The notes under the pieces: generated by a model | Seen by the model: the letters and a program-made list of their open reading frames with translations, nothing else | Told to the model about the DNA's origin: nothing | Databases searched by the model: none | Made by a program: the position numbers and the translations under genes | Shown: piece by piece, positions 2,480 through 47,636 of the stretch | Position numbering within the stretch: position 1 is the stretch's first letter | How the letters are laid out: every line of letters begins with the position of its first letter | Assembly: GCA_023213395.1 (NCBI GenBank) | Contig: CM041465.1 | Coordinates: 204,173,741 to 204,237,740 of the forward strand | Length of the DNA stretch: 64,000 nucleotides | Direction of reading: 5' to 3' | From: Cycas panzhihuaensis | Taxonomy: Eukaryota > Plantae > Cycadophyta

Positions 2480-5413
2480 TACCTATTTGGGGGGACTCAA
2501 AGATAATCTTTGAATTTCATAAACTTTATTTTGCCAAATGCCTACCATTTGATCCTCTTTGCTACAATAAATCAACTCTAATTCACCTTATTGCATTAAT
2601 TCTTTAATGAAGTGTTGTTCTGTTTCAATATTTTTTTTTTCACCATGAAACATTAGATTCGTAGTCATTTGGATTGTACTCTGATTATTACAAAATAACT
2701 ATATAAGACCAATTTGTTCTTCTTATAAATCCTAAAGTAATTTCCTAAGCCAAACTATCTCACAAGCTCTTGTTCCAACTGCTTTGTATTCTGCTTCTAT
2801 AGTAAAGAGAGATATTATTGCCTATTTCTTTAAGCTCCATGCTATTGCTATTGAGCCCAAACTAAATGCATAACCTAAAGTAGATTTCCTATCATTTACA
2901 TGACTTGCCTAGTCCGAGTCTATATAACTAATCAACTTGTAACCCCCTCATAACCTGTAATGCAAACCATACCCAATAGTACCTCTAAGATACCTGACAA
3001 TCCTTTTGGTTGCCTATTAATGTTTTACCTTAGGCTCGTGCATAAACTTTGAAACCATACTGACTCCATACATAATGTTTGGTCAAGTTGAAGTTAAGTA
3101 CATAAGGTTCCTAATCAACTACCTATAAAGAGTAAGATCAACTAATTCAGACTCCTCAAACTTAGATAATTTTAGCCCAACCTCTACTAGTATTGTAGGT
3201 GGCTTCTAACTATCCTTGTTGAATTTGTATAACATATCTAATGTGTATTTTCTCTGTGACACAAATATCCCCTTCTTAAGAAATAATGTATAAATCCCAA
3301 GTCTATCATCTCAAATTCTTTGCACATATCTTTCTTAAACTTTTGGGATAAGTAATCATAATTCCTAGTATATACTAAGTCATCCACATATAAGCTGACA
3401 ATTAATATTGAGCTTCTTTCCAATTTTATATATAACTTGGGATTTAATTAGCTCCTTAAAAATTCTTTATTCTTAAAATATTTATCAATCATAGAGTGCC
3501 ATGCTCTAGGTGCTTATTTAAGTCCATATAAGGCCTTTTTGAGTTTGTAGATATTGTCTTACTTTTCTTTTACTTCAAAACCTTTAGGTTGTTGGGCATA
3601 TATCTCCTCATCTACATATCTATTAAGGAAGGCACTCTTCACATCCGTTTGATGGACTATCCAACCTTGTTATGTCATTAAATTCATGATTAATCTAACT
3701 ATTTCCAACCTTGCAACATGTGCAAATATTTCATTGTAGTCTATGCTTTCAATTTGAGCATAGTACCTTATAACTAATTGCACATTGTATTTGTCAATAT
3801 ACCCATCTAACTTATACTTGGTTTTATAGACCCATTTTCTCCCAATGACATTCTTTTTAGGTGGCAAATTAACTAATTCCTATATATCATTCTTCACTAA
3901 AGCATTATATTCTTCCTTCATTGCATTTCTCCATTCTACTTAGTTATTTATCTCTTCAAAGTTTTGAGGCTCATTTGACTCCATATCTTGAGTCATAAGT
4001 ATAAAATTTACCCTTTAAGATATTGTTATTCTTCTCTCAAAGTTTGTGTCTAAAATTTTTAAGAATCGTGAGTCCTTTGTACCTATTTTAGAACCTTTTG
4101 GCTTGAAGTAAATGGTCCTACTTCACTTGCACTAGGCACATTTCTATCACTTGAGTTAGAGTCCACTTCAATCACAATGATTTTACATTTTCATTTTTCA
4201 ATAACTTCCTCTTGATAGAATTCATCTTCCTAAAGATAACATCTCTACTCATAATGGTTCTATTACTCTTAGGGTCATATAATTTATAGGATCTTGATGA
4301 GTTACTATATCTTATAAATATGCACTTAGTGCTTTTATCATTTAATATTATCTTTCTTTATTTTGGAATATGTGCATAGGCTATACACCAAAAAATCTTA
4401 AGTATTTGATGCTTGTTTTATGATCTATCTAAGCCTCCTCAAGTGTACGCCATCTCACTACCTTAGTTATATATTTGTTGAATAAAAAAATAGTTGCATG
4501 TATAACTTTTGCCTAATATTCATTGCCAAGATGCTTATCCTTAAGCATTCTCTTAGCCATCTTAATAATGGTCATGTTCTTTCTTTCTATAACCCCATTT
4601 TGTTAAGGGGTGTAGGGATTTGTAAGCTGCTTCTTTATCCTAAAATATTTGTAACAATCCTTGATTTCATTTGAAATGAATTCTCTCAATTATTTGATCT
4701 AAGAGTTAATATGTTATGTTCACTATGCCTTTCAATCGTGACTTTGAAATTAATAAAATATTGAAGTGCATTTGACTTGTACTTAAGAAAATGAACCTAA
4801 GTCATCCTTATAAGTCATTAATGAAAGTTATAAAGTGTTTAGTTCCTCTAAGTAAAGCTACATATATTGGTCCATATGTATACTAGCTAAAGAGGCCTAT
4901 TTGCCTTATAACTGTCATTAGGAAATCCTTCCCTTTGTTGTTTACCTAGTATACAACCTTCATATACTTTTTTTCCATGTTTAATGTCAAATAGGCCAAT
5001 TACCATTTCCATCTTGTTTATGAATGCCAAGATGTTATTGTTTACATAACTAAGTATTTTATACTAAGCCTTACTATCCAAATTAATTGATAACTTCAAG
5101 GTGTAATAATCTATTAGGAGAATGACTAGTTTAAATAATCTATCACTAGTCATTTAACCCTTAGCAAGTATTGCTTTATTCCTTAACTTGTCCTTAATTG
5201 TACACTCACCATTATCAAAGGTAACCTTATACTTTTGCTTCATCATTTATCCTATTAATAACAAGTTTTTCTTAAATGTAGGGACATGGAATACATCAAT
5301 AATACATCTAGATTCTCTAAAGTCTATTTGGATGGCTACATTTTGTTTACCAATTGCAGCTTGAGTGGGATTATCTCCAAATATTAATTTACCTTTTTTA
5401 GTGTTGTCTAACT
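2480..5413 (-). pseudogene. Copia-1 pol remnant (protease C-part, integrase, RT, RNase H)
   Basis: ORF fragments 3238-3423 (LYVDDLVY..FEMIDLGFIHYFL) and 3670-3867 (VIGRKWVYKTK..IDYNEIFA); many stops. Confidence 0.9.
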
Positions 5414-5751
5414 TATTAGAATATAATGTCTAATCATTTTGTATATTAATCATACGTATTATAACATGTGTCATTATTCTATGTATCGGTTACAAAGTAG
5501 TTCTAGAAGGTTATAAACCCTAATTATCTTTTTAACCATACTGGTGTACAGACATGTCTATGCAATCGTACGTAAATGCTTCTCCATACAAGATTTAGAC
5601 CTAAAATGGCTCTGATACCATGTAGGATTGATGCTACAATGGCAAATGAAGAATACTTGATGATCTTATATATATATATATATAAGATCATCAAGTATTA
5701 TATATATATAATACTTGATGATCTTATATATATATATATAAGATCATCAAG

Positions 5752-5802
<51 letters not shown>

Positions 5803-5811
5803 ATCATCAAG

Positions 5812-5856
<45 letters not shown>

Positions 5857-5865
5857 ATCATCAAG

Positions 5866-5918
<53 letters not shown>

Positions 5919-6089
5919 CTCAATAAGATCATCAAGTATTCTTCATTTGCCATTGTAGCATCAATCCTACATGGTATCAGAGCTATTTTAGGTCTAAATC
6001 TATATATATATATATATATATACATATACACACACTCTTAATAAGATCATTAAGTATTCTTCATTTGCCATTGTAGCATCAATCCTACA
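5414..6089 (+). repeat. Copia-2 5' LTR, rearranged (inverted and direct duplications of U5-PBS, (TA)n-spaced 16-mers)
   Basis: 5414-5527 matches the start of the 3' LTR; 5526-5668 is the reverse complement of U5-PBS-leader; two direct U5-PBS copies end at 5971 and 6089. Confidence 0.93.
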
Positions 6090-6802
6090 TGGTATCAGAG
6101 CTATTTTAGGTCTAAATCTTGTCCGGAGAAATATTTACGTACGATTGCACAGACATGTCTGTACACGAGTATGGTAAAAAATATTTTGTCTTAAAATTTG
6201 ATGAAATTTCACCTAGAGAAGTGCCTCGACCTGCTTTTTACTTCTCTCTAAAGGATCAAACTCAAATTTTATTGTTTTGATGCCCTAAAGACTCCCTGAA
6301 GTTGTATAATTGTCATTGGAGTTTTCTACTTATTTCTCACTATATGAACATCTATACTAGGAAAACCTAGTATCAATAGAAAGCCCTCAGTATAAGATTT
6401 CCATTGATATATGACTTGAAGGCCTTCTCCTTCAATTCCATAAGAAATCAATAAAATCGTGAAAAAACCCTAGCCACCTATTGGAGTTTTATCTAGATTT
6501 TTCTCCTTACTGAGAGGTCCATTCAAAAAAATAGTTCCAGATCAGGAATCTACACATTAAGGCCATTCTTTTGACATCTCTTTCAGAGAATTTTAAGAAA
6601 GTTAATTTTTGACTCATTTATTGTATAGTATCGCCACCCGTACGGTTGTCAGCAGCAGTTTTTAATCTTAGGAAAACACTAAAAAAACCTCCTTGCAGTA
6701 TTTTCTTATTTTAACTGAGTATTATAGTCTCTTTCATTTCTTTTAAAAATATATATTAAAAAGAGAGATATATTTGTTGCACTTGCCTTCTTCTTCTCCC
6801 AT

Positions 6803-7196
6803 GGGTAGATAACATTGTTTGGCAGCTACTCATTCCCAGCCTTAGAGACCCTGTTCTAGGGGTCTATAAAAATCATGTTAAACCTGTCATTCTTGGCTAA
6901 GCATATTGGGAGTTTAGAACCATCATGTGAAGCAAGAGGAATTGAAAGGACCCAATACCTAAGCCTCAGATAGAACTCACTCATGAATTTGAGGCTCCAC
7001 GTACCAAAAGGTATATAGAAGGACCCTATAGGACCTTGAGCCCAACCTAGCTTAGGGAGCTTAACCGACTGCCAAAGCCTCGTAGTATATTTAGTGGTTA
7101 GCGCCATGAAGCCACTTGTCTCGAATCTCTATTAGAGGTTTATCGACAAGCCTACGAGTCCAAGTAATCCTGTGTCTAGACTTGATAGAATTACTC
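6803..7196 (+). promoter_or_regulatory. Conserved structured leader module (candidate IRES-like RNA), copy in Copia-2
   Basis: Colinear homology to the minus strand of 45442-45817; conserved stems with variable loops; predicted pseudoknot; ends 8 nt before the gag ATG. Homology is seen directly; function is inferred. Confidence 0.6.
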
Positions 7197-7204
7197 ACCT
7201 TCTC

Positions 7205-10200
7205 ATGGCTTCCTCTCTTTAATTTTTCGAGTCTAAAAAACTCACCAATGATAACTATGAATCATGGAAGACCAAGATGAGATCAATTTTAGTCGCTTAG
7301 GGTGCATGGGACCAGATGGGCAGTGCCAAACATGAGCCTGCAAACACTGTTGAAAAGAAGGTGCACATGGAACAAAAAGGTGTTGCACTTGCCTCCATAA
7401 CTATGTCAGTTGCATACTCCATCCTACCTCACATAGCAAGCACCACCACTCCTCATGAAGCTTGGACCACATTGAAGACCTTATATACCTAGAAAAACAT
7501 AGCTTGTGTCATGGCACTCAAAAGCCAAATGGCTACCCTAAGGATGTCTGAATTAGAAGACTTCACCTCCTTTCTTGAACGATTCAAGCTTCTTCATGAA
7601 AACCTGATGTTAATTGGAATGAGTTATTTAGATGGTCACCTCATTGATCTTATTATACACAAACTTCCTGCCTGATTCTAGAACTTTGTTACATCTTACA
7701 AGTTGACAATAGAAATTGTACAACCCTTATTCACTATTATTTATGGCCAACTTCTACATCATGAGCAGACTGAAACCAATCTTGAGAATGAATTAGAAAA
7801 TGCATTTTCATCTTGAGTAAGTATACGAAGCAGGGGCACCACCAACAAAGGAGCTTTTCGTGCATTAGACCGAGGGAGAAGATGACCCACAAACTATACT
7901 CCTAGTAGAGGATAATCTTCTCCCTGTACTCACTCGATCTAATACTCGGGAGGATGACTCAGTCACCAAATCATCTGATATTATTATAAAAAACCTGGTC
8001 ACTACACCATCGGCTGTCGTCACCACAAAGCTAACATAGAAAGGGGGATCATAGCCTCAGGTAGCTACTTAGGACAACTTGACAGAAAGGAGTTAATTAA
8101 AGAAGAAGAAGAAGAAGAAGAGACTATGTTTGTAATAACTCTTTCCTCAGCAGTAAAGAACAAAAATCATGATAATTGGTTTATAGACTCTAGAGCTTCT
8201 AGACACATGATCAGTAAGCGAGCATGGTTCAACAGCATAAGCCCTTCTTAAAATTGCAGCTTAGTCGAACTTGGAGATGATAGCATCCATCCAATACAAG
8301 GGCATAGAATAATGCCTATTACCTTATCAGATGGAAACACTAAAAAAATTGGCCATGTGCTCTATGTACTAGGGATGACAAAAAACATGTTATCTATATC
8401 TCAACTGATAGACAACAAGCTCCGGGTCCTATTTGATAGTGATGGATGTGTCATTTTTGATAAGTACAAAGGGAACAAAGTAATTTGTGAGGGCATTAAA
8501 ACTAATAGATTGTACAAATTTCTTGCCACACCAGTTCACATTGCCCTTCATATAACTAAAAATTTTGATAATGGAAAACTTTGGAATTTATGCTATGGTC
8601 ATTTGTCTTATGATGCTTCATCCTTATTAAGCAAACATGATATAGTGCATGGCCTTCCATGGATAAAAAACTCTACCTCTATTTGTAACACATACATGAT
8701 GGGCAAATAATGTAAACTGTAATTCTCTGCCAACGCTACCAGAGCACATTACAAATTGCAACTAATTCACAATGATCTCTATAGTCCATTCACTCCCCCA
8801 TCCTTATAAAGGGCATGCTACTATTTGACCTTCATAGACAATTGCACCAAAAAGATCTCGATCTATTTTCTTAAATTAAAATTTGATATATTTGACACCT
8901 TTCTTAAATTTAAAGCCAAAGTTGAAAAAGAAAGTGAATGCAACATCAGATACTTGAGGACTGATAATGGTGGGGAATTCACATCCAATGAATTCACACA
9001 ATACTACAAGAAAAATGGTATACAAAGACAATTTACAACTCCTCACTCTCCACAATCCAATAGAGTGGCTGAGAGGAAAAATAAGACATAACAGGGATGA
9101 CTTATTCCTTGCTAACAAAAAGGGGTAGGCAACAAATATTAAGTTGAAGTAGTAAATACAGTTATATACATTCTCAACAAGAGTCCAATTAAAGCTTTAG
9201 AGAACATAACCCCTGAAGAAGCATGGTCAGAGCAGAAGCCAGATGTCTCACACCTTTGAGTCTTTGGATCAACCATCTACATGCACATTCTTGCTGAAAA
9301 GAGAAAGAAATTAGATGATAAAAGCAAGAGATGCATTCTTGTGGGATACGGTGAAGTATCCAAAGCATATCAATGCCTAGATCCTCTAACGAATAAGATC
9401 TATCCCAGTAGGGATGTGCACTTTGACAAATCAACTAATGAAGACCCCATTGATGGGAAAATTGTACCTACTTAGTCAGTTGACATCATCATACCAAGTT
9501 AGACTCAATCTCACTCTCAGATAGATCAAGGTGAACAACAAGGAATAAAAAATACACTAACACCGATTGTCAGCACAAGTGTCTTTGATGAAGGATCACA
9601 CTCATCTAAACAGAACAGGGCTGTCAACAACTCAATTCAACCACAAAATCTCTCACAAAAAAATGTTTTAAAATGGTACCTGAAAACAATGGAGGAATCT
9701 AAAGTAAATCCAAATCTCATTCAACAAGGGAAAAGAACCATAAGTCAAATGCATCACGGGCTTGCTACTCAATATAATATATCATATCAACAAGCCCAAA
9801 ATGATCCTCATTGGAAAGAAGCAATGAATAAATAAATGGAATCAATCTACAGTAATAAAACTTGGGAACTCACTACTCCTCCTCAAGGAAAACCCATCAT
9901 TGGATGTAGATGGTTGCATAAAATCAAGGAAAAATATGATGGATCAATTAAGAAATACAAGGCTCAACTTATTGCAAAAGGCTATTCTCAAACTCAAGGA
10001 ATAGATTATGATGAAACATTTGCTTCTATCAGTAAAATAACAACCATTAGGACAGTAATTGCCCTAGTTACACAAAATAATTAGCCAATATATCAAATGG
10101 ATGTTAAAGAAGTCTTTCTTAATGGAGATCTTCATGAGGAAGTATACATGGAATAACCACTAGGATACATCACACAAGGACAAGAACACCTTGTCTACAA

Positions 10201-11310
10201 ACTTAACAAGCCTCTTTATGGACCAAAACAAGCTCCTAAGGCTTGGTATGCAAAGATGGACTCCTACCTACGAAGTCTTGGAATAAAGCGATTAGAAGTT
10301 GACTCTAGCCTTTACATTCACACTGATAAGAATGACAAAGTCATAATTCTTATATTGAATGGTGATGATCTGATACTCACTCATAATAACACCAACTGGA
10401 TCAACTCTTTATGACTTCAGTTGTCCAAAATCTTCAAAATAATAGATATAGGAGAAATCCACTACTACCTAGGAATAGAAATTCATAAGCTAAAGGGTGG
10501 AATCTTCATACATCAAAGTAAGTATACAACACGCATATTAAAAGACTTTAGTATGATAGACTAAAAACCATCTCTTACACCCATGTACTCTAAAACCAAG
10601 TTCATTGTTGATCCTGATGGGGAACTAGTAAATGAAACTCATTACAAGAAACTAGTTGGAAATCTCATATATCTCACTTCAACTAGACCAGACATTGCAT
10701 TTGCAGTAGGACTAATCTCAAGGTACATGTCTGCCCTAAAGGTATCACATTAGAAAGCAACCAAGCATATTCTTCGTTACCTGCAAGGATCAAAGACATA
10801 TAATATTTACTACAGTAATCAAGGATCAAATCCATTAATCAGGTACACAGACTCAGACTGGGCATGAGACATTAATAGTTAGAAATCTACCTCTCGATAC
10901 TGTTTTGATGTAGGAAACGGTATTATATCTTGGAGAACGAAGAAATAATCTATTGTATCATTATCTGCATCTGAAGTAAAATACTAAGAAGTAGTTCAAT
11001 CCTCCTATGGGGCTATTTGGCTAAGACATCTCTTGGATGAACTACAGTTTTCTCAAAAGGCTACAACCGTAATCAATTGTAACAATCAGAGCACCATTTA
11101 AATGACAAAAAACCCAGTTTTTCATGCCTGAATGAAACATATTGAAGTTCATCATCACTTCATTTGATAGAAAGTAGACAGAGGGGAAGTCAAATTATCC
11201 TATTATCCAAGTTCAAAACAATTAGCTGACATCTTCACAAAACCTCTTCCCAAGAAGAAGTTCATGTACCTCAGAGATAAGATCAGCATGAAGGAAAAGG
11301 ATATGACATT
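7205..11310 (+). pseudogene. Copia-2 gag-pol remnant
   Basis: MASSLIFESKKLTNDNYESWKTKMRSIL; WFIDSRASRHM; ORFs 8312-8710, 8825-9091, 9281-9475, 9836-10084; RNase H KHIEVHHHF. Confidence 0.93.
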
Positions 11311-11319
11311 AAGAGGGGA

Positions 11320-11505
11320 TGTTAGAATATAATGTCTAATCCTTTTGTATATTAATGACACGTGTTATAACACATGTCATTATTCTGTGTATCGGTTACA
11401 AAGTAGTTCCAGAAGGTTACAAACCCTAATTATATATATATACTCTTATACTCTCAATAAGATCATCAAGTATTTTTTATTTGCCATTGTAGAATGAATC
11501 CTACA
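11320..11505 (+). repeat. Copia-2 3' LTR (186 bp)
   Basis: TG...CA termini, follows PPT, followed by TSD. Confidence 0.95.
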
Positions 11506-12146
11506 TAACTCCTTAAACCATTCTTTTCTATGTATCATATGAGTGGAACGTCCTGAGTTAATATACTAACTATCCTCCTCTTTATTTACTATTAGGCTTG
11601 ATAAGAAAAGTCTCTAATTTTTCTTTAGTTCTTTAACTATTGTATTAGCTATTTCTTTTGCATATTGGACTTTTTTGTGAAACAATTTATTTCTAAGTGT
11701 CTACTTCTATGACAATATGAATATTGCATTATTCCTCTACCTCTATGACTCTTTTCTCTTTGGCCTTAATTCCTTTCCCTTGGATTTTATCCTCTACCTC
11801 TTCCTTGAGGTGTAAAGCCTTGTCTTTGAAAGTATTATCTTTGCCCTTGACCTTGCCCTTGATAGAATTAATCTTGGCTTTAATGGAATTAGCCTTGGCT
11901 TTGATAGTAAGATCCTTACCTTTAACCTTAATAAGATTAATCTTGTTTTTGATGAAATTGCCCTTCATTTATGAGGTTTTATCCTCTTCCTATAAGAGAT
12001 TGTTATCTTTTCCTAGAACTTTGGCCTTCAAAGGTAGGCCTAATCTTTGCCTTAGTGCTAAATGCATGTTCTAATGAATCACTACCCCCATTTTTTTCTT
12101 CAATAGCAAGTAATATTGTACTAAGATGATCAATCTTGAATGTAGC
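11506..12146 (-). pseudogene. Copia-1 gag C-terminus (Q/G-rich segment, RG repeats, CCHC knuckle) and protease N-part
   Basis: Manual translation: LEHAFSTKAK...GQGQGQ...GRGRG...YSYCHRSRHLEINC, then *YINSGRSTHM (degenerate WYIDSGCSTHM). Confidence 0.85.
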
Positions 12147-19677: not shown

Positions 19678-19922
19678 TGATAGAATTAGAGGACAAATAC
19701 AAGAGAGCAGGCAATAGGGAAAACCAACAATTTATAAGGAAGGTGGTGTTGATAAACACCAAGGTCTTTAGACCCCATGTAGATATAGGTAGGACTTAAA
19801 GGATTTGGCACACCTCTTAAGGTCCACCACCACCTGGTGTTGACAAACGCCTGGCAATGTATTGCCACAAGATATTTACCCAAGATATGGGTGATTACCC
19901 CAATGTGGGTATTATTCCAACA
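19678..19922 (-). repeat. Copia-1 5' LTR
   Basis: TG...CA termini, adjacent PBS, TSD TCTTC. Confidence 0.93.
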
Positions 19923-22127
19923 TCTTCTGTGCTATAATGGATAGTCTAAATTAACCTCTTTCCAACCATTTGGCTTTTTAATAAGGGAATCCTTCGTTAG
20001 AATCTTAGTGTAGAAAGACTTAATATTCAATTTGAAAAATAAATTACCATTAAAACCAAACTAGTATTTCCAAATTTTATGTTTGATTTATTATTAAGAA
20101 TGAACATTCTCTTTTTGGTTAATAAATGGTTAGAGTTTTATAACAACAAATTTGTCCTATTATTAGAGGTTAATTTAGCTTTAATTATATGCTAATACAA
20201 CTAAATTATGCCTTAAATTATCTCATAATCTAACTTGATTGCTAATTCCTTTCATTCTCAACTTATACCTTAAGTTTAAGTTAATAACCTATAACAATTA
20301 ACCATATTCCTTAGAAAAGGGAAATCTCCCTCAAGACGTACTACTTGATAGTCCTTAGGAATTGACACTCTTCCTTGGAAAGACAAAAATCACCACTAAG
20401 ATTGGTTATTAAATGATAAACCTCTTCTTAGATCCTTAAGACCCTAAATTACATAATTAATAAGATTTATTTAAGCTTCCTAAATTTCGCATACTAATGG
20501 AGATCTTTTATTTTTAAAGACCTTGAGATTTAAAGTCACATCTTGTCTAATTCACAAGTGATTCTAATAGTGAATGAGACCATAACTCCATCATAGAAAA
20601 CCTTACCCTTTTGAAGATATACCTCATATGATTAGTTGGCCTAAGCCAAAATAAAAGACTTCAAGTCATAAGTAAATACATTGATCACATTTATATAATA
20701 TTTTCCATTTTAAGTAATTTCATCCACAAGCTAGACATAAATCCATACATACTAGTTTTTACAAAATAGTACATATGATAAGAATATAAAATATCCATAT
20801 TAAAACTTCTACACTAAATCCTAATGAAATAACATATAAAGTGCCTCCTTTAAATACCTATCCTCATGACTAATGGATAATAATAAAAACATATAGACAT
20901 TATAAAATCTATTTTATTGTATATTATATTAAAATGCCATTACGTTATATATATATGCTTCTTTTCCTTAAATTATGATTTTGTCATAAATTAGTATTTC
21001 TTTAATAAAATATTTGCACCACTTAAACTATGTGTATACATCTTAAGGAAACATTTCACAATCAATAAAATTTAGCACACTTTCTGCTATAATATTCTTT
21101 TGGCATATAATCCAAATGAATAATGTTTCATCTACAAACACATTTATTACTCGTAGATCCGTAAGGTATAGCCCATATGCTAAAGGTCATTCCTTTCATC
21201 AAGTTTATATATGTTGAGATGATATATGGGTATACTCAACTTAGAGGCTACTTATGTAATAGGGAAGAGACATATTAGGCATATTGGGTACTTTTATAAT
21301 AGAAGTTAGGCCATAAGATTCAAAATTCCTATAATCTTGAATGCTATAAAATTCACTATCATAGCCTTCATTATTAAGAAAAAACATCATCATATGTAGA
21401 GCCATTCATATTGATTTAATCACATGATTCATAACAAGATTCTCTTAAATATCTATTTAGCAACTTTAAGACTATAATTTGAATTTAACCCATTTTAGGT
21501 ATTTTATTTGCCATGCAATAAAATTTGGCATTATTACTATCATGTTTGATTTAAATCAAATATGATTCTACTCTTATTCAATGTTGTCTTCATGTTACTT
21601 CTAATTGAAAATTAACTCTAATTTGGGTCATGTAATCAACATCAAATTTATTCATACCATTTATAATATGATTAAATTTGACTCAAATGTCGTCAGTATC
21701 ATGTTTGATCCTCATGATTTAAATATGATTCTATACATATTTTACTTTATTTTAAAGTGTTAAATCTAATTAAAAATTTTCTACACTTGTTTCTTATTAG
21801 CTGAAGATGAATGTGTTAATTAAAAAAATATAAAGTTATAATTAATAAAATTTAGGCATCTTCTTGGTCATATAATCAAGATCAACTCTAATATAATGCC
21901 ATCATAAGATGTGGCAAAATTAATTATAGCTCTACTTTTATTTCATAATGTTTCGAAATCTGATATGATACCAAAACATACCATGTCTTTTTTAATTTTT
22001 TCATGATAATTATATCAATTATAAAACATTATATCATAGATAAAATTATTAATAACGCTAGTTACACAGATGTAACATAGGAGGATAAGAATATAGGATT
22101 TCATAGAAATCTTAGTTAGACCATAAC

Positions 22128-22628
22128 TATTAGATATGTTGAACACTTTGCAAGTGTTACATAGGTATAAGCATTATGCATGAGCCCCTTTACAGGGTCT
22201 GGGGCCCATTATAGGGCCCTTAGCTAAGGGGTCTAAGGGACCAGTGACCCCCCAGGCAGGGGTTCGAAGGCAAGAGCCCCCGAGAAAAATTTTTGGGTGT
22301 CTTATGGGGGTCTTTGTTGTCCCATGGTTTATGCCTATTATATTGTAAAACCGCAAGGCAGTGTCTTATAATATTGTGTCTATATATTCTTATGTGATGA
22401 CACATGTATAAAACAAGTTGGATGAGTCTTTGATGAGTTGATAAGAAGAGTTGGGGTTTATTCATCTCTGTAATTCTTTAACTGTTGCTTAGATTAATAG
22501 AAGGTCTATGCTTAGATCTAAATCTCTTAGTGTTCTTTATTGAGTGTTTAGCTTGTTTATGCTATTTTGATCTTTACATGGTTTATAGCTCTGCTAGCAT
22601 TGCTTCTGCAATTATATTTTTCTTATCA
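22128..22628 (+). repeat. Copia-3 5' LTR (501 bp)
   Basis: Aligns to 26735-27158 with ~77 bp of extra GC-rich sequence. Confidence 0.93.
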
Positions 22629-22712
22629 TTTGGTATCAAAGTAAGGTTTTAGTTTTATGGGAAGCCATTTGGTAAGTAGGAACCTTGTTCGGTGAACTTG
22701 AGTGTGAAGATC

Positions 22713-25700
22713 ATGGAAAGCACTACAAAGATGGAGATTGAAAAGTTCAATGGCTAAAACTTTGAGTTATGGAAGTTAAATATGGAAGATATCCTCATCG
22801 AGAAGGATCAATGGATCATTGTAGCAGGAACAAAGCCTATAACTATGGGTGATGAAGACTAGAAGAAACTTGATTGAAAAGTAAACAGTTTGATAAGGTT
22901 ATTCCTTTCAAATATAATATTGTTGAATGTTGTCAAAGAGTCTATAGCTAAAGATCTGTGGAAAAAATTAGAGACTTTGTATTAGATTAAGTCCCTGGTT
23001 AATAAGTTATTTATTTAAAAAAAGATGTATTCACTTAAGATGAGTGATGGAGATGTAGTTGAAAATCATCTCACTATATTTAACACCATGGTAAGCCAAC
23101 TTGTTTTAGTTGGGATAACAATGTCTGAAGAGGACATGTGTATTACCCTATTATGTTCACTTCCTGATTATTAGGATAATCTTATGATGATGATTAGTAA
23201 CATGACTTCTCTTACCTTAAAATTTGATGATGTTGTTACCATTCTGCTATGAAGAGAGACAAGGTAAAAATCTTCTAAAGATTATTTAAAAGAAACATTA
23301 GAGGTGAGAGGTCAAACATTGGATCACAACCAACAAAGGCCTAGGGACAAATAGCCAAAATCTAGAGCAAAATCTAAATCTCCAAGCAAAGGCCCCTTGG
23401 TATTCTAGATATGTAGAAAGGTGGGCTATATGAAGAGCCAATGTCAAGTCAAGGTTGATAAGGGAAAGTCACTTGAAGCTATTTCTTCCATGGTAGCAAA
23501 AGACTTTAATGAAACTAATGGCAATGTTTATTTGGCAACCTCAGGTAAATTGTTAAATGTTGAGTCTTGGTTAATTGACTATAATGATTCACTTCATATT
23601 ACTCCCCATATGGAGTGGTTTTGTAAATACACAAGTATTGATGGAGGTAAAGTATTTCTTAGGGATCATTACCCATATAAAATTATAGGTTATGGAAGGG
23701 TGAAGGTCCGGTTTGGGGATGGAAGGGTTAAAATTATCCCTAATATGAGTCATATTCCTGGTTTGGCTATCAGTATGTTGTCTATCGGTCAATTGAGTGA
23801 TGCAGGAATAGAAGTGATTTTCAATAAAAATAGTTGTAGAATAGTTTGAGAAGCATTGGGTTTTAGTAAGAGGGGTCCGATTTGGAATACTATTTAAGCT
23901 TGATGCAAGTATGATGTGTGCTAGAAATTGCAGTCCAACTATTATAGAAAATAGCAATAATGCAGGAGGGACTTAAATATGACTTACTAGTAAAACTATG
24001 TTGTAGCATCAGAGATTGGCCCATATTAGAGAGAAAGGCCTACATGATTTATTCTCGAAAGGTATGATAGAAGACATCTCTAGAATTAATGGCTCCTTTG
24101 ATTTTGATTTTTGTGAGCATTGTGTGCATAGAAAACAAAATCAGTCAATTTTCCTTCAAGCTTGAAAAGAGCAAAGGGTATTATATAATTAGTACACAGT
24201 GATGTTTTTAGACCTATTGATGTGCCCTCATTAGGTGGGTACAAATACTTTGTCTTATTCATAGATAATTTCTCAAGAAAGATATGGTTATACTTTCTTA
24301 GATAAAAATCTGAAGTCTTAAGTAAATTTAAAGAATTTAAGGCATTGGTCAAGAATTAGAGTGATAGGCAGATCAAGGTATTGAGGACTGATAATAGAGG
24401 TGATTTTTTCTCAAAAGAGTTTGATCAATTCTATAAGCAGTGTGGGATAGCAATGCAAAAGATAATTTCGTATACACCACAACAGAACAGATTTGTTGAA
24501 ATAATGAATAGGAGCTTACTGGAGAGATCAGGGAGTATGCTCAGTGCTACTAGATTATAGAAGAAATTCCAGGCTAAGGCTATGATAACTACAAGCTACC
24601 TAATAAATAGATCACCAACAACTACCTTAGTATATAAAACACTTGAAAAAGTGTGGTATGGTAAGAAACCATCTATTGGTTATCTTAGAGTTTTTAGTTA
24701 TAAAGCTTATATGCATGTTCCTAAACAGTAGAGGACTAAGCTTGATTTCAAAGCACAAAAGACTATTTTCATTGGCTATGGTGATGGTGTTAAAGGGTAT
24801 AAGCTTTATAACCTTAAAATAAAAAAGGTTATGTATACCTATGATGTTGTCTTTAGAGAGGATCTCAAGTCTCTAAACCAGGATAAAGAACTAAAGGAGA
24901 AAGACTCTAAGAAGGTATAATTTGAGTTAAGGGATGAAGATCCTACATCAAAATATGAGTCAGTTGAAGAGGAAGGACCAACTATAGAGGTAACTCAACC
25001 TTAAAAACCCTACATCTTGAGGAGATCAACTCATGAAAGAAGACATCATGATAAGTATATTCCTAAAGACTTTCGTTGCACCTCTTTTATTTTATCTACT
25101 ATAGATGATAATCTAGGTACTATTCGAGAGGCTTTCGAGTCAAAAGAGAGCCAACTCTGGATGAAGGCCACGCAAGAAGAAATAATTGGCTTGGATAAAA
25201 ATAACACATGGGATTTAGTGGATTTACCCGATGGTAGGAAACCTGTTGATAACAAATGGATCTTTAAGAAGAAGTTTTAGGCAGATAGTATTATGGAAAA
25301 GTATAAGGCTCACTTGGTAGCAAAGGGCTATTCCCAGGTCAAGGGAATAGATTTTAGTGAGGTATTTTCTCATGTTATAAAAGTTGCTTCAATTAGATTT
25401 TTATTGGTTGTAATAACTTCCTATGACCTTGAGGTGGATTAAATGGATGTGAAGACTACATTTCTTCATAATGACCTCAAGGAAGAAATTTATATGTTAT
25501 AGCTTGAGGGGTTTAAAGTTGCATAGAAGGAGAATATGGTGTGCAGGTTAAAGAAGTCATTATATATTTTGAAACAATCACCAAGGATGTGGTATCAGAA
25601 GTTCAATTTACATATGTTGGTAGATGGCTTTGTGCATAGCAAAGTAGATCATTGTATTTATTATAAGCAGTTTGGTGATCATTTTGTTATTCTAACTTTA

Positions 25701-26690
25701 TATGTTATTGACATCCTTTTAGTTGGTAACAACAAATAAATGATCCAACTTGTGAGAGGCTAACTTGCATCTTATTTTGAGATGAAAGACCTTGGTTCTG
25801 TACATTTTATTTTGGGTATTAAGATTAAAAGAAATAGGAGAAACATAAAGATTTGGCTTAGCTAAAGATGACACATTGAGATAATATTACAACAGTTCAG
25901 GTTGAAGGATAGTAAACTAATTAATGTTCCTTTTCCTATTAGTTTAAAATTATTAGATGAATAATGCTCGAAGACTCACCAAGAAGTTGAAGGCATTCCA
26001 TTTGTCCCTTATTCTAGTGTTATTGGTAGCTTGATGTATGTGATGATTTGCATTTGACCAAACATTTCCCATGCAGTGGAAGTAGTTAGTAGGTATATGT
26101 CAAACCTAGGCAGGGAACATTGGGTGGCTATGAAAAGGATTTTCAAGCATCTACGAGGTACATCATACTATGGAATTTGCTATCAAGGAGATCCCATGAA
26201 GAGTGGAATAATAAAATTGAGAGGTTTTATTGATGTTGATTGGGTTGGAGATCTTGACAGTAGAAGATCTACAAGTAGGTATGTTTTTACCCTTTGTGAT
26301 GGCGCAATTAGTTGGATGAGCAAAAGAAAGTAAGTTGTGGTCCTTTGTAGCACAAAAGTAGAGTATATAGCAACTACTCATGTGTGCAAGGAAGCAATTT
26401 GGTTATAGAGATTATGCACAAATATTATCTTCAACCAAGATGCTATGAGGATAGATTGTGATAGTCAAAGTGTAATCTACTTAGCAAAGAATCCCATTTT
26501 TCATGCTTGGTTGAAGCATACTGATGTGTAGTTCTATTTTATGAGAGAAATGGTTCAATATCATAAGGTGGATTTGTAGAAGATTACTATATAAGAGAAT
26601 ATTGTAGACTTATTGACCAAGATTATTAGATTAGAAAATTTTAGATGGTGTAGAAATATAATGGGTATTTGTGATCTTGGTATTAAGTAG
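22713..26690 (+). pseudogene. Copia-3 gag-pol remnant
   Basis: ORFs 23421-23849 (PR), 25017-25280, 25536-25739 (RLKKSLY.LKQSPRMWY), 26076-26333 (DVDWVGDLDSRRSTS). Confidence 0.93.
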
Positions 26691-26734
26691 TTGTGTATGC
26701 ATGTTTCCTATAAAGTGTTTAACAAGTAGGAGAT

Positions 26735-27158
26735 TGTTAGATATGTTTAACACTTTGCAAGTGTTACATGGGTAACAGCCCCCCAGGTAGGGGTTTGGGG
26801 GCAAGAGCCGCTAAGAAAAAATTTTGGGTGTCTTATGGAGGTCTTTGTCGACCCATAGTTTATGTCCATTGTATTGTAAAACCATAAGGCGATATCTTAT
26901 AATGTTGTGTCTATATATTGTTATGTAACGATACATGTAAAAACAAGTTGGATGAGTCTTTGATGAGTTGATGAGAAGAGTTGGGGTTTATTTATCTCTG
27001 TAATTCTTTAGTTATTACTCAAATTAATAAAAGGTGTATGCTTAGACCTGAATCTCTTGGTGTTCTTTATGGAGTGCTTGGCTTGTTTATGCTATTTTAT
27101 TCTTTGTATGGTTTATAGTTTTGTTAGCATTGCTTCTAGGGTTATATTTTTCTCTTCA
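26735..27158 (+). repeat. Copia-3 3' LTR (424 bp)
   Basis: TG...CA termini, followed by TSD. Confidence 0.93.
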
Positions 27159-34681: not shown

Positions 34682-35094
34682 TTTTTTTAAAGGTTTAAAT
34701 GAAGAGTTTTGGATTATGGTAGTGGAAAGAGACTAAAGGAGTTGTGTTGGAATTTTTTATATGAATCCTTCATAATAACTAATTTATATTGATTAATCAT
34801 TTAAGCTTTAGTTGATATCTATAGGGTTTCTCCTATGAAACCTATTATCTATGACAAATTTTATGATCCTTTTAGACTAAGGGATATTGAACTTTGTTGG
34901 GTTCTGATCCATTTGACGATTCATTTTAAGTTTCCATGTGGAGTTATTGAACCTATTCTTTTGGAGGTTTTTTATAGTTTTCATTTCCCATAGGGATAGT
35001 ATTATGAATTGTAGGGGTCATTAACCCTTATATAATTAAATAACGATGTATGATGGTGAGGATTCAGGCATTTGGGAGCTTTCTAAGTCTAAAC

Positions 35095-39948: not shown

Positions 39949-40363
39949 TGGGATGTTTATTCTGACCAACACTCTTTGAGATAATAAAAAATGACAATAG
40001 CAACCACGTTGTTTTATCCAATAGGGCAAACAAATTAACCAAGAACTTCACAAGAACACGAGAGAGCTAAATGATCACCAAAATAGAGAGCACCGCAGCA
40101 TAATCTTTATAAGAAGGCACATGAAGATAACCATCATTTACAATTTATGACCTTTATATAGATAAAAGAGGGTCTTCTACATGTAATCCTATTGGTGGAC
40201 TAAGCGGCCTTACATTCCATTAGACGACAAAGCGGCCTTGCATATCATTAGCCAGCTTGTTAGCTCATGTACAAAGTTCTATAATTACCCTTATCTTATA
40301 ACATGTTGATAACTCTTCGAATAATAGTGGTTTGTATAACTTAGCGAGATATATTATGTAATA
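39949..40363 (-). repeat. Gypsy-2 3' LTR
   Basis: Aligns with 46155-46569. Confidence 0.95.
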
Positions 40364-40379
40364 GGTCTCCTCCCTTAAG

Positions 40380-43300
40380 ATCTTCAGTTCTCGAGGCATG
40401 TGAGATGTAGGTGCTTTCTGATAAAATCATCAGACTCCCAAGTTGCTTCATTAGAGTTGTAACCTATCCACTGTATCAAATATTCTGAAATGGAACGATT
40501 CTAGAGATAGCATTATCTGGTAGCCAATATACATTCTGGAGGTATGAACAAGGTTTGCACTTCATCTAAAATTGGAATGGTTATCTGGGAAATATGGAAT
40601 TTGCTTAGACTCTTCCGAAGATAGGAGATATGAAAAACATTATGGATGTTTGTGGTGGGGGAAAGGTTGAAAGCATATGCAACCTCACCAATATATTTAA
40701 GGACTTTATAGGGGCCATAATATCGAGGGCTAAGTTTGTGGTTCTTATGATGGCGAAGGGATTGTTACTTATAAGGTTGGAGATGAAGGAATATAAGATC
40801 ACCAATATTGAAGGAACAATAAGAATGGTGGTGGTGTGCTAATTGTTTCATTCAATTATGGGCCATAGAGAGGTTTTATTTAAGGGTGTGAAGAATTTGG
40901 TCTATATATTACAATTTTTGTTGTACTACTGCCGTGCGGAGGTTGGTAGCCAAGGTGTGGTGGGATGGTGGGGGATACCTATATAGAGCCAAAAATTAGG
41001 ATATTCCAATGGCTGAATAGTGTGAAGAGTTGTACCAATACTCAGCTAGGGCTAGCCATGATATCCATTTATATTGGTGGTCAGATGCAAAGCAACATGA
41101 GTAAGTCTCTAAAGTTTGGTTAAGGACCTCAGATTAGCCATCGGTCTATGGATGGTATACCTGACTCATGTTGAATGATATTCCTGATGCACGGAATAGC
41201 TCCTACCAGAAGGAACTAGTGAATTTAGGGTCGCGATCACATACGATAGTGGATGGAAAACCATATAAATGAAATATTATCTGGATGTAAATGTTAGCGA
41301 TACATGGAGCTTTATAGGTCATGTAGACAGGTAAGAAATGGGCATATTTTGTCAATCTATGTATGACTACTAAAATGGAGTCAAACCTGATAGATAGTGG
41401 TAAGCCTGCTATAAAGTCCATGGTAATATCTTACCATTTACCTTGTGGGATGTACAATTGTTGAAGGAGGCCTAGTTGGGGTTTTGTATCAACTTTGTTA
41501 CGTTGGCATGTGTCACATTCTGAGACAAAGGTAAGGATGGTAGATTTTATTTCTTGCGAAAAGAAATTAGAATGTATCATATAATAAGTTTTATCAAAAC
41601 TAGAATAACCACCAAGAGGGGAACAATGATATTCTGATAAAATTCATGAGATAAAAGCTGAGTGGGGGTGTACGAATATGTGATTTTGGTATAAGAGAAG
41701 ATTATTATGGATGGACCAATCCTTATGAGTGTGGACCTTATCATCCCAATATGCAAAATCAGGTTAGGTTTGGTGACTCATGGCTAAATCTTATATCCAT
41801 GTTAGTTGTGGGGAAGAAATGGCATAAATGGTGGGGTCCTCAATATGATCAGTGTTATCGTCAAGTGTAGGTGAATGTAGCCTCAAGAGAGCATCTTCCA
41901 CAATGTTATCTTTCCTCTTTTTATATGTGATTGTAAAATAAAAAATGTGGAGGCAGTCGACCCATTTAGCCTGCTCTTCCGAGAGGACTGGTTGATCTAG
42001 TAAGTCGTGAAGGCTATGATGATCAATGAGGATAGTAAATTTAGAACCAAGTACATGCTGTTGCCATTTGTCAACAACATGGAGGATGGCTCACATTTCT
42101 TTTTTATAGGTAGATAGTCTACACTCATGATCTTTGAGTTTTTGACTTTTGAAGGCAATGGGGTAGAAGTCATGTATTAAGACTGCACCTAACCCAAACT
42201 CGGAGGCATCGCATTCTAATTAGAAAGGCCGAGAAAAGTCGAGAGAGGCCAAAACTAGGGTGGTTTTTATGACTTCCTTTAGATGGAGGAAGGCCTCATT
42301 AGCTGAGGGAGACCATTGGAAGGAATCCTTCCAAAGTTAGTGGGTTAAGGCGGTGGTTAGTGTGGCATAATTTCAGACGAATCGACGATAAAATCTAGTA
42401 AGTCTTTAAAAAGCCCATAATTGGGTTAGGGTTTTTGGGGTTGGCTAATTAGTAATGACAAAGATGTTATTGGGATCCACTCAAACCCATACAAAGGATA
42501 TAATATGACCAAGGTATTATAGTTCAGATTTACCAAACTCACATTTGGAGAGTTTAGCATACAATTTATTCTCAGCTAGGATTTAAAGAACTATTTCTAG
42601 ATGCATGATATGAGCAGTATGTTTGAGCTATAGATAAGAATACTGTCAAAGAAGACGATGATTAATTTTCACAGGTATAGGGAAAAGATCTTGTTCATGA
42701 GCGTCTGAAAGGTGGATTGAGCATTACATAGGCCAAAGGGCATGACCTAGAACTTAAAGTGGCCATGGTGGTTTCAGAAAGCCATTTTATATTGATCCTT
42801 TAGCAAGATAGGGATTTGGTAATATTCTGACTCTAAATTGAGTTTAGTGAAAATTACAACACCATGGATTTTATCTAACATATTATCGATTCATGGTGTG
42901 AGAAACTTATTTTTTATGGTGATTTTATTGAGCACATGATAGTCAACGCAAAGTCAGAAAGAGCCATCCCTTTTGTAAACTAAAATGATGGGTGCCATGT
43001 ATGAGATTTTACTAGGTTAGATAATACCCATGTCCAACAATTTCCTCATGATTTTTTCAATTTTATTTTTTTGGAAATAGGAGTTCCTATATGGTTGAAG
43101 GCTAAACGAGTCATGTGAACTTTGTAACTCAATAGTATGATAACAACCTTGATCGAGCAAGGGGCTGGTAGGTAACAGAGCAAATATAGATTGGTATTGA
43201 TCTACTACTTGATGGATATCAAGGTGAATACCCGAAGGGGCCTAGATATGGTTAAGATGAATAATATATCCTATGTTACCATTGAGTTGTTGGCATATTC

Positions 43301-44887
43301 GAGTGGGTTAGATTACTTTATTTGGGGGGGCTTACATCCCATAAAGTTTATATGAGTGGCCCATGTGATCTTTGAATATAATGAATGGTGCCATGGGTGA
43401 GTTATTGGTGTTATAAGTTCCTAGAGTCTGGAGCCATTGTACACTAAGAATTGTATATGACCTACCTATGGGCGAAGTAGAAAAATCAGAGACAGGGGTA
43501 TATGAGCCAATGTAGATCGTAGGTTTTTTATTGTTCCAGTACAATGGAGGATGTGATGACCAGGTAAGGAGCAAGTAAATCTTATTTTAGGTTCTATGTA
43601 AAGATTCAACTATCGAGCAATAGAGATATCAATGAAATTTACTAATGTGCCACCATTGATTAAAATGGTAATTGGGGTTTTCTAAAGTATTCCTTTAACT
43701 CGAAGCAGTTCAGGATGTGTAGTGGAGGTAACAACTAATAAGGAAACTTCAAGTTCAGGGTTTGGGGATAACTCATCAATAGGGTGGTCTTGGGATTCAT
43801 CAGTATATTTGTGCTCAGTCTTAGGGTCATCTTTCAAAGATAAGTCTAGATCAATTTTGAAGACCATCTTCCTAGCTTTATAGATTCTATTGTGACCAGA
43901 GGTCCATTTTTCAGAACATTACATACATAAACCAGCTTCCCGATGACGTTGTGTCTCTATTGGAGTGATGTGTATGGACTTCAAAGATGGTTCCTTAGTG
44001 CATTGCTCAAGATATGTAGATGGGATGTCCTTTAGTCATGGGTGTGATCATTAGTAGTCAATTGGACATGGTTTTTGGTACCAGGCAGTATCAGCTTGTC
44101 TGGATCGTGAAAGCCAAGTGGAGTCTCATATGAATGGAGGAGGCCTTTCTGTGGCAAATTTTGCTTCTACTGCTTTAGCCATACTAATTACATCTTCAGG
44201 CGTATTTAGATACGTTCTTTAAGCCCAAACACATACACATCTATCTCTATCTATTTATTACGTTATTGATCAACCTGATTAAAGATTAGAACTCATCAGT
44301 GTAAACTTTGATAGAGGATACTTGCTTCAATCATGTTAGTTATGTGAAAAAATATTAATTCCAAGTGTCTTTATACTACTTGAAAAAATAGGTAGATAAG
44401 TGTGCCCAAGACCGACTAGAAGGGTACTCTTGCTTCCACCATTGGAACCAATGATGTGCCTTCCCATCTAAGTGGATGGAAGCAAATGTAAGTTGTTCAT
44501 TTACTGACATTGGGTTGAGTGTAAAGTAGGACTCTAGTTTACCAATGCAACTTCATGCACTATCCTTGTTGAGATCTAGATCAAATGTGGGTATGTTGAT
44601 GTTATAATAAAATGGTTGTTACTGATGTGGAGGCAGAGGCATAGTTTGTTACTATATAGATTTGATTGGCAGTGAGGAGAGAAGTTGTTCAACCTCTGAA
44701 TTACATTTTGGATATCAGTATGGGATGCTAGGTCTGACAATTTTGAGGTAAATTATGTCCATATGATATCTACTTCATTTTTAACCTCCTTGTGTATGTG
44801 GTCTAAATCTTCCTTAATTTTTTTCTAAATATTGGTGACTTAGGTCTTGAGTACCAAGATTTTATCACTATTGCTTTGAGGAGCCAT
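40380..44887 (-). pseudogene. Gypsy-2 gag-pol remnant
   Basis: ATG 44887 (MAPQSNSDKIL); gag Zn motif (EAGLCMYCSEKWTSGHN-like); RT FFDSILIYS; INT; chromodomain ~40410-40545. Confidence 0.9.
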
Positions 44888-45441
44888 GGAGAAAGGGTGT
44901 AAAGAGGCGAGAATAAGTAGAAAGAAGGGGAATGAATGAAGTGGGAAAGATCAAGAGAGAACGGGACGTAAGAAAAAGGTGTTGTTAAGGGAAAGAGAAG
45001 GGGGCAAATAAAGAGATTGTTGGGTGTCTATAACCTATTGTTCCTAAAGAATTTACATAAAAAAGATATTAAGTTCTCTCAAATAAGTGCGAAAAGCTCA
45101 TTCAAATGGTGTATATGAAGTGTAGGGGGGTTGGGGGTGGTGGGACCCTCCAATGACCATATATTAAAAAATGTAAAAAATTTTTGTATGTACCAACCTA
45201 GTATAAACTGACTAGTACGATATGCTAATCGAAATGAGGTATAGTTATAAGGGTAATTTATTTTTTTATGTTTTGCTTCCCTTTTCTCTTTTTTATTTCT
45301 TTTTCTTTTTTCTTATTCTTTTTTTTTTTTCCTGTAGTGAGTCTAACTACGCTGACAGGTTCCGAGTTTAAGGAGTAAAAGGAACTTCTTTTTTTCAAAA
45401 TATGAGATGACTTATAGTCTGAACCTGGAATATGTATACCA

Positions 45442-45871
45442 GAGTATTCTACCAACCACTAGATAAGGTGTGCTCGGTCTTATAGGCCTACTAATAAACT
45501 GTAGAAGTTCAGGGCAAGTACCTTCGTGGCGCTAAATGCTAACCACTGCACTACAAGACTTCAGTGGTCGATAGTTGCCTATGCTATGGAGGGATTGATG
45601 GGTCATCTTATATACCCAAAGGTACATGGAGGCACACTTCCGTCACTAGGTTCTGTCTAGGGCTTGATTCAGGAGTGTTAAATCCAGTCCTTCATGCAAA
45701 AGACGGAAGAGCCTCGATGCGATTAACTAGAATGATAGATCCCTATGATATTTAAAGACCCCTGGTATAGGGTCTCTACCTAACTACTTGGGTAGTTACC
45801 CAACGGTGTTATCTACCTAGGAAAGTAGGTGGAAGGGAGAAAGGGTAGTTGCCCAACGATGTTTTCTACCC
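45442..45871 (-). promoter_or_regulatory. Conserved structured leader module (candidate IRES-like RNA), copy in Gypsy-2
   Basis: Homologous to 6803-7196; the first hairpin is present twice (45790-45817, 45843-45870). Confidence 0.6.
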
Positions 45872-46154
45872 TTGAGATATAATTCAATGCAAAAATTGAA
45901 ATACAAAAATGAAATTAAAACTAGATGAAAAATAAAAGGATAAGGTATTGGCATTACCTGGGAAAAAAATTCTCCTTTTTCTCCTAACTCTTAGACTGTC
46001 CTAGTACCGTTCCTCAATCTCGGTGGAGAGAGTACTAAGCAAAGGTCTTTCCTCGATCTCTACTAGGGTAGAGAGAGTACTCAATTTGATAGAAAAAAAA
46101 AAAATTGATCTTTCAGGCAGCTTCCCACATTCACAATGCAAATATGATACCACT

Positions 46155-46569
46155 TGGGACATTTCTTCTGACCAACACTCTTTGAGATAGAAGAAAATGA
46201 CAATCGCAACCACGTTGTTCTATCCAATAGGGTGAATAAATTAACTAAGAACTTTACAAGAACACTAGAATGCTAAATGATCACCAAAATAAAGAGCACT
46301 GCAGCATAATCTTTATAAGAAGTTACATCAAGATAACCATCAGTTACAATTTGTGACCCTTATATAGATAAAAGAGGGTCTTCTACATGTAAACCTATTG
46401 GTGGCCTAAGTGGCCTTACATTCTATTGGACGATAAAGTAGCCTTACATACCATTAGCCAACTTGTTAGCTCATACACGAATTTCCATGATTACCCTTAT
46501 CTTATAACATGCTGATAACTCTCCGTATAATAGTGGTTTACATAACTTAGTGAGATAAGTTATGTAACA
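46155..46569 (-). repeat. Gypsy-2 5' LTR
   Basis: TG...CA termini, PBS adjacent, TSD TTAAT. Confidence 0.95.

Positions 46570-47599: not shown

Positions 47600-47634
<35 letters not shown>
47600..47634. repeat. (TA)n microsatellite
   Basis: Directly visible. Confidence 0.97.

Positions 47635-47636
<2 letters not shown>

Follow-up and report, generated by a model that had tools for sequence, protein, structure and literature searches.

A leader segment of common origin in a Ty1/Copia and a Ty3/Gypsy retrotransposon of Cycas panzhihuaensis

The 64,000-nucleotide (nt) stretch of the Cycas panzhihuaensis genome studied here (contig CM041465.1, positions 204,173,741–204,237,740, referred to as the window) harbours two complete long terminal repeat (LTR) retrotransposons of different superfamilies, the Ty1/Copia element Copia-2 and the chromovirus-type Ty3/Gypsy element Gypsy-2, the leaders of which share a non-coding block, hereafter the module. 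Consistently with the superfamilies named for the two hosts in the original prediction, which had proposed the module as a mobile RNA resembling an internal ribosome entry site (IRES), each is a complete element flanked by target-site duplications (TSDs). Their Pfam domains are those of the respective superfamilies: Retrotran_gag_2, Pol_BBD/gag_pre-integrs, rve and RVT_2 in stop-free pieces of Copia-2, and Retrotrans_gag/Ty3_capsid, RT_RNaseH and SH3_Tf2-1 (the Tf2-type SH3/chromodomain region) in Gypsy-2, which also has LTRs of 414 bp that are 88% identical and a polypurine tract. Protein searches gave no candidates for the gag N-terminal piece and, for the Copia protease/pre-integrase piece, distant relatives only, at 39% identity or less. 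The primer-binding site (PBS) of Copia-2, TGGTATCAGAGC, is canonical for initiator methionine tRNA (tRNA-iMet), and a local duplication has placed it at both 5972 and 6090; it is followed by a leader of 1.1 kb (6102–7204) and by the gag ATG at 7205. Gypsy-2 has the unusual PBS TGGTATCATATT (46152–46141, minus strand) rather than TGGTATCAGAGC. The 5' LTR/PBS region of Copia-2 (5526–6185) is itself rearranged, with three exact PBS copies, one in minus orientation (5609–5620) and two in plus orientation (5972 and 6090), and an LTR-end fold-back around long (TA)n runs.

A colinear homology between the two leaders, both in element sense, had been claimed on inspection and was recovered by nhmmer in two directions and by alignment, over approximately 390–405 nt (Table 1); the matching blocks quoted at the time were found as written. 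Copia-2 and Gypsy-2 agree at 232 of 373 aligned positions (62%), the differences being 78 transitions and 63 transversions. By contrast with the module itself, the leader parts outside it (46140–45878 and 45428–44888 in Gypsy-2 versus 6102–6790 in Copia-2) have no mutual similarity, and together with the nhmmer E-values this shows that the homology is genuine, has sharp limits and greatly exceeds what chance would give. Each copy is placed in element sense within a TSD-flanked element, between PBS and gag, the Gypsy-2 one starting about 310 nt past the PBS; as the two hosts have separate TSDs, the module was carried within each element when it inserted. The six frames of both copies share no open reading frame (ORF) beyond what nucleotide identity predicts, and a protein search with the longest ORF across the module gave no hits. 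Sequence comparison thus supports the presence, in a Ty1/Copia and a Ty3/Gypsy element, of a non-coding leader module of common origin. A two-sequence profile run over the 64 kb found no third copy except a 35-nt tandem piece (45877–45843) just ahead of the Gypsy-2 module, and the same arrangement of tandem 5' block and CT-rich spacer was also present in one public contig (joint 6835>6804).

Table 1 Positions of the module copies, their internal and flanking features, and the host elements in the window.
Feature	Position	Strand	Remarks
Module, Copia-2 leader	6787..7196	+	CT-rich 5' edge included; nhmmer envelope 6787-7191, E 5e-28
Module, Gypsy-2 leader	45442..45831	-	nhmmer 45831-45446, E 6.6e-28
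Partial tandem copy of module 5' block (GGTAGAAAAC...CTACC), then CT-rich spacer	45843..45877	-	nhmmer E 5.9e-05; repeat search 89%
Second PBS-like 13-mer TGGTATaCATATT, abutting module 3' end	45429..45441	-	Gypsy-2's own unusual PBS + 1 nt
10/11-nt direct repeat flanking Copia-2 module (CTTCTCCCATGG / CTTCTCATGG)	6793..6804 and 7199-7208	+	Second copy holds gag ATG
Hairpin 1 (GGTAG...CTAC)	6804..6830	+	Gypsy-2 ~45817-45791; RNAalifold helix 1; 4/5 pairs invariant, one changed on one side only
Hairpin 2 (AGACCCT / AGGGGTCT; loop differs)	6846..6865	+	Gypsy-2 45775-45756; RNAalifold helix 3, 7 invariant pairs
Hairpin 3 (GTACC-N4-GGTAT), then TATA-like GGTATATA	7001..7014	+	Gypsy-2 45625-45612; RNAalifold helix 9, 5 invariant pairs
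3' sub-domain, closing 7-bp stem, A-box-like motif inside	7081..7160	+	RNAalifold helices 12-15; Gypsy-2 motif GTAGTGCAGTGGTTAGC 45554-45538
Copia-2, complete element	5414..11505	+	TSD TAACT 5409-5413 and 11506-11510; short LTRs expanded by (TA)n
Gypsy-2, complete chromovirus-type element	39949..46569	-	TSD ATTAA 46574-46570 and 39948-39944

Evidence on the families behind the two copies came from Logan contigs of four public DNA runs from three related organisms, placed on positions 6000–7800 of the window at 80% identity or more. Each run contributed 6,100–7,300 contigs, which covered the interval wholly (all 30 bins), and the variation of the Copia family among them showed transitions and transversions in a ratio of about 4:1. 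Diverged contigs spanned both the upstream border (6698–6903) and the border between module and gag (7140–7316), and among the contigs on 6000–7800 there was no pile-up of contig ends at the module borders, which together indicate that the module is an integral part of a high-copy Copia family of related species rather than a one-off insertion. The best-supported loose ends fell inside the module (before 6843 and behind 6875–6877, 7060 and 7086), and the consensus of the loose sequence before 6843 and behind 6877 and 7086 followed the wording of Gypsy-2 rather than that of Copia-2. Moreover, six of the eleven majority variants within the module were the Gypsy-2 base, so that a second, Gypsy-2-like subfamily of the module appears to be abundant as well. 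After allowing for private decay, we estimate that the two module lineages would be about 70% identical.

The distance between module and gag start differs between the two hosts. In Copia-2, as originally stated, the module ends 8 nt ahead of the gag ATG (7196 to 7205), a start that agrees with the Retrotran_gag_2 domain just downstream and with the tblastn alignment of P0025, a distant full-length Copia protein whose residue 22 falls at 7250. The counterpart proposed for Gypsy-2, an ATA at 45433 read as a decayed ATG, was not borne out; its frame stops after 12 codons. The best gag start of this element is the ATG at 44887–44885 (CTTTCTCCATGGCT), 555 nt beyond the module end at 45442; the frame opened there has only three stops in about 105 codons, encodes a coiled-coil-like gag N-terminus and leads into the capsid domain (44552–44379), and judging from these features the ATG is probably the true start. 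Downstream of the Gypsy-2 module come first the PBS-like 13-mer and about 110 nt, then a 70-nt A/G-rich tract and, ahead of the gag ATG, about 375 nt that look non-coding; the fixed distance between core and AUG that characterizes IRESs of the hepatitis C virus (HCV) type is absent (8 nt in Copia-2 versus 555 nt in Gypsy-2). Upstream AUGs are not common to the two module copies, several being products of CpG decay (CACG to CATG). The 70-nt tract of the Gypsy-2 leader (45262–45332, minus strand) is almost pure A/G and may represent either an internal polypurine tract or what is left of the poly(A) tail of a retro-copied insert. The sequence ACCCTTTCTCC stands ahead of both the Gypsy-2 gag ATG and the module 5' block (44879–44898 and 45827–45846, minus strand), and the gag start contexts of Copia-2 and Gypsy-2 are alike in combining a CT-rich tract with ATGGCT.

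Single-sequence folding of the two copies was modestly more stable than that of dinucleotide shuffles (z = -1.88 and -2.74). The RNAalifold consensus had 64 pairs and an energy of -46.5, compared with -27.9 ± 4.5 for column shuffles, none of 300 of which reached it, and this exceptional energy is due to the invariant inverted repeats GGTAG...CTAC, AGACCCT/AGGGGTCT and GTACC/GGTAT. These short conserved palindromic hairpins are real; their conserved pairs never vary, and the block of hairpin 2 was retained in many diverged public contigs (loose ends 6843/6877). Conservation of stems with differing loops, which the original prediction had taken as the mark of selection on RNA structure, holds for these three short hairpins, whereas over the module as a whole identity is grouped into blocks only marginally more than at random (p 0.02–0.05) and the longest identical run, 11 positions, is what chance predicts at 62% identity. 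Twelve of the 64 consensus pairs were changed on both sides, versus 10.4 ± 2.9 in 300 re-folded column-shuffled alignments, 101 of which reached 12, a comparison that involves two sequences only. Nine of these twelve apparently compensatory pairs were double transitions of the CpG-decay type: where both arms of an inverted repeat carry CpG, as in the outer 3' stem CTCGTAG/CTACGAG, decay of methylated cytosine on the two strands readily yields such pairs. Covariation on the RNAalifold structure looked good against built-in controls but was rejected, since the structure had been chosen on the same alignment, making that control circular, and the signal was gone against column-shuffled alignments. 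The reverse complement gave an energy signal almost equal to that in sense (z = -3.2 versus -4.1). Thus, the two-copy tests gave no evidence of a covarying, sense-specific RNA architecture with a pseudoknot, and, as far as two copies allow, neither significant covariation nor a fixed spacing was found, two outcomes that the original prediction had itself named as counting against it.

The two module copies also differ at their 3' junctions, where Gypsy-2 has a PBS directly after the module (TGGTATaCATATT, 45441–45429) and Copia-2 does not, having the gag ATG there instead. This 13-mer is the sole match in the window, with 0.05 expected; since it copies the Gypsy-2 PBS, a 699-nt block (46140–45442) is bracketed by PBS copies. 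The duplicate fits a crossover at the one sequence common to both superfamilies; it would fit equally well if the module descended from the U5 end of an LTR, which natively abuts a PBS. A wholesale acquisition by Gypsy-2 of a Copia-type leader, from PBS to ATG, was considered and rejected, because the 263 nt between its first PBS and the module are unlike the upstream leader of Copia-2. A third near-copy of the Gypsy-2 PBS, TGGTATCATATC, lies at 21973–21962 (minus strand). The Copia-2 module is flanked by an imperfect direct repeat, CTTCTC(C)CATGG (Table 1); as a CT-rich tract also stands ahead of the Gypsy-2 module, this repeat may be chance, a shared motif or part of the module. CCATGG being self-complementary, its two copies pair in the minimum free energy fold and close the Copia-2 module into one domain. 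The upstream copy opens an upstream ORF (uORF) of three codons (ATG GGT AGA TAA).

The other retrotransposons of the window give some measure of what a leader looks like here. A second Copia element (22248–27153, plus strand; 376-bp LTRs 86% identical, PBS TGGTATCAAAGT at 22631) has no more than about 250 nt of leader ahead of its gag domain, so that the module-bearing leaders of 1.1–1.25 kb are atypical here and contain acquired extras. Gypsy-1 (28222–34684, minus strand), with a pol that is 67% identical to that of Gypsy-2 over 2.4 kb, has only about 610 nt from its PBS-like site (34435–34424) to the region homologous to Gypsy-2 43696; with so short an interval it is without most of gag and any module, and looks deleted or non-autonomous. 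An LTR-like pair (2217–2480 and 19678–19938, 78% identical) is accompanied by the PBS-like TGGTATCAAAGC at 19675–19664 (minus strand), and Copia-2 appears to be nested within the older minus-strand element of about 17.7 kb that bears this pair. Near Gypsy-2, positions 47600–48450 hold a large imperfect (TA/TG)n palindromic array with arms of about 270 nt that are roughly 80% complementary.

The explanation that we favour, and to which we give an even chance, is that the module is a leader segment which passed, by recombinational exchange or capture, between retrotransposon lineages of the same genome and has since been inherited in each family, possibly with no function at all. A non-coding piece of common origin, from the interval between PBS and gag, would have moved between LTR-retrotransposon lineages of different superfamilies and would since have been replicated along with each host, within the genomic RNA of that element. 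Recombination during reverse transcription, by template switching between co-packaged RNAs, would be the likeliest route. The tRNA-iMet PBS common to both elements could act as the crossover point, as suggested by the duplicated PBS at the two ends of the Gypsy-2 block; minus-strand synthesis may, for instance, have continued past the Gypsy PBS onto a second co-packaged RNA, up to the PBS of that RNA. Conserved features, judged from the alignment, are limited to three short perfect inverted repeats, which may form leader hairpins, and a TATA-like box. If the module is functional, a generic, position-tolerant leader element (dimerisation, packaging or regulation at the DNA level) is more likely than placement of ribosomes on the start codon; the data fit a neutral passenger just as well.

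Within families, retrotransposons are well known to recombine and to evolve as mosaics, and BARE-1/WIS-2, Ty1/Ty2 and CRM1 are examples of recombinant LTR retrotransposons. As in the mosaic or recombinant elements described among the complex LTR retrotransposons of Triticeae (PMC1950507), which arise through template switching or recombination between elements, a non-coding part of one element lies inside another and was then propagated, homology ends abruptly at the block borders, and the junction falls at a short shared sequence, here the PBS duplicate. However, those mosaics join related families of one superfamily, whereas here a Copia element is combined with a chromovirus-type Gypsy element and their sole shared sequence is the 12-nt PBS, which makes sharing across superfamilies moderately unusual. 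The autonomous and non-autonomous partners BARE-1 and BARE-2, for which conserved signals are described in the BARE leader (PMC3735527), likewise conserve a PBS-proximal leader between elements that share replication machinery, but belong to the same lineage, in contrast to the present elements, which are both of autonomous type and of different superfamilies.

Several points weigh against exchange or capture of a leader segment. Template switching is a mechanism that we infer, and the segment between the first PBS and the module in Gypsy-2 is unlike the upstream leader of Copia-2. Both the direct repeat at the Copia-2 copy and an A-box-like motif in the module would also fit an old small-retroposon insertion into a master copy. 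The reads support the family-level status of the Gypsy module copy only indirectly, the estimated identity of about 70% between the module lineages suggests that any exchange was old rather than recent, and only two copies were read. Finally, compensatory pairs at the level of shuffled alignments and an antisense signal close to the sense one make any function of the module conjectural.

The strongest competitor, which we regard as a definite possibility although an improbable one, is that a small mobile element (a tRNA-related short interspersed nuclear element, SINE, or the R-U5 end or solo LTR of a third family) inserted independently, long ago, into Copia and Gypsy master copies and was propagated with its hosts. 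The leader is the only internal site at which an autonomous element tolerates insertion, and the module stands at different positions in the two leaders. The 11-mer TAGTGCAGTGG, about 290 nt into the module, agrees at 10 of 11 positions with the A-box consensus of RNA polymerase III (Pol III), and lies in a unit of about 80 nt with a closing 7-bp stem; the 17-mer GTAGTGCAGTGGTTAGC of the Gypsy-2 copy is similar both to a Pol III A box and to the 5' strand and D arm of a tRNA, and is also found inside a genuine tRNA-Glu gene of a phage. The weak B box is not the same in both copies, and GTAGTGCAGTGGTTAGC is best taken as a hint, short of a demonstration, that part of the module descends from a tRNA or SINE. 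ARAGORN, at default and at relaxed 85% thresholds, found no tRNA-like gene, neither copy gave a hit to the Rfam tRNA model even at E up to 10, and two conserved blocks scanned in metagenome and viral contigs gave chance matches or phage tRNA genes only. TRIMp3 elements such as Helenus carry tRNA-like sequence in their LTRs (PMC10886601), and the module resembles these and tRNA-related SINEs in having a motif like an A box and a tRNA 5' half within repeated retroelement sequence; it differs from them in lacking a detectable tRNA fold, a B box that is clear in both copies and a tail, and in being internal to autonomous elements instead of part of a miniature-element LTR.

For an inserted element speak the 10/11-nt direct repeat around the Copia-2 copy, the TG (6802) and CA (7197) at the ends of that copy, the PBS-like 13-mer straight after the Gypsy-2 module, as would follow a 5' LTR, the TATA-like box about 170 nt ahead of the module end, and a slight excess of distinct contigs with the module over those with its flanks. 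Against it, the 5-mers flanking the TG and CA of Copia-2 differ, the Gypsy-2 copy has neither TG...CA ends nor a TSD of 4–6 bp, and no A or T tail stands at the 3' end of the Copia-2 module, the A/G-rich tract of Gypsy-2 beginning only 110 nt past the homology. Moreover, no standalone and no paired LTR-like copies occur in the 64 kb, and the reads show neither contig-end pile-up nor heterogeneous flanks at the module borders.

A bolder form of the exchange account would make the module a transferable cis-acting leader cassette that depends on host machinery, with three invariant hairpins, exchanged between Copia and Gypsy at the tRNA-iMet PBS and selected in both. We consider this doubtful; such a cassette could, for example, signal packaging or dimerisation, so that one family is carried in the particles of the other, or act as a portable translation or export element. 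Taken by itself, the first of these, a cis-acting dimerisation/packaging RNA shared so that one family is mobilised by the particles of the other, a parasitism through the packaging-signal mimicry that non-autonomous elements show towards their autonomous partners, seems to us unlikely. It would accommodate the position of both copies in the leader in sense orientation, the retention of three invariant short hairpins in a sequence otherwise 62% identical and the tRNA-iMet-type PBS of both elements, and co-packaging would also explain recombination between them. However, the Gag proteins of Copia and Gypsy are unrelated in sequence, each element encodes its own gag, compensatory changes are not in excess and the inverted-repeat signal is not specific to the sense strand; we know of no case of packaging across superfamilies.

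LTR retrotransposons transduce host fragments between PBS and gag, and a fragment of a host transcript, from a gene or a non-coding RNA, might accordingly have been captured into the leaders, independently or once and then passed on. We think this very unlikely. The 70-nt A/G-rich tract about 110 nt past the Gypsy-2 module could be read as a poly(A) remnant of such a capture, but it is absent from the Copia copy; Rfam 15 gave no match at gathering score in the window and noise only at E up to 10 on both copies, and neither a protein relative of the longest ORF nor a coding signal common to the copies was found.

The least probable reading, and one that we would set aside, is the IRES-like or ribosome-shunt module of the original prediction, swapped between superfamilies to place ribosomes on the gag AUG, since, against an abutting AUG in Copia-2 with a junction retained in a diverged contig (7140–7316), long leaders of 1.1–1.25 kb, CCAUGG at both ends of the Copia-2 module that can close it into one domain and modest single-sequence folding scores, stand a Gypsy gag AUG that lies 555 nt downstream past the A/G-rich tract, compensatory pairs at shuffle level that are mostly of the CpG-decay type, a nearly equal antisense signal, unshared upstream AUGs and the lack of any Rfam match, no IRES family being hit at E up to 10 on either copy. 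The module does resemble HCV-like IRESs, the leaders of Drosophila gypsy and Idefix, and the shunt leaders through which caulimoviruses control translation (PMC5902531) in combining a long leader with local hairpins upstream of gag, one copy abutting the AUG. Unlike them, it is without conserved spacing, a pseudoknot or domains supported by covariation, an Rfam match or a conserved short uORF before the structure, and nothing links it to these leaders by descent.

If recombinational exchange or capture of a leader segment is the correct explanation, a block of about 400 nt present at high copy in Copia and Gypsy lineages would show that non-coding parts of retrotransposons can cross the superfamily boundary, perhaps at the PBS. 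Were a function proved, the block would count among the few portable cis-elements of plant retroelement RNAs. As a passenger it would still matter for annotation, since such shared blocks will mislead repeat classifiers.

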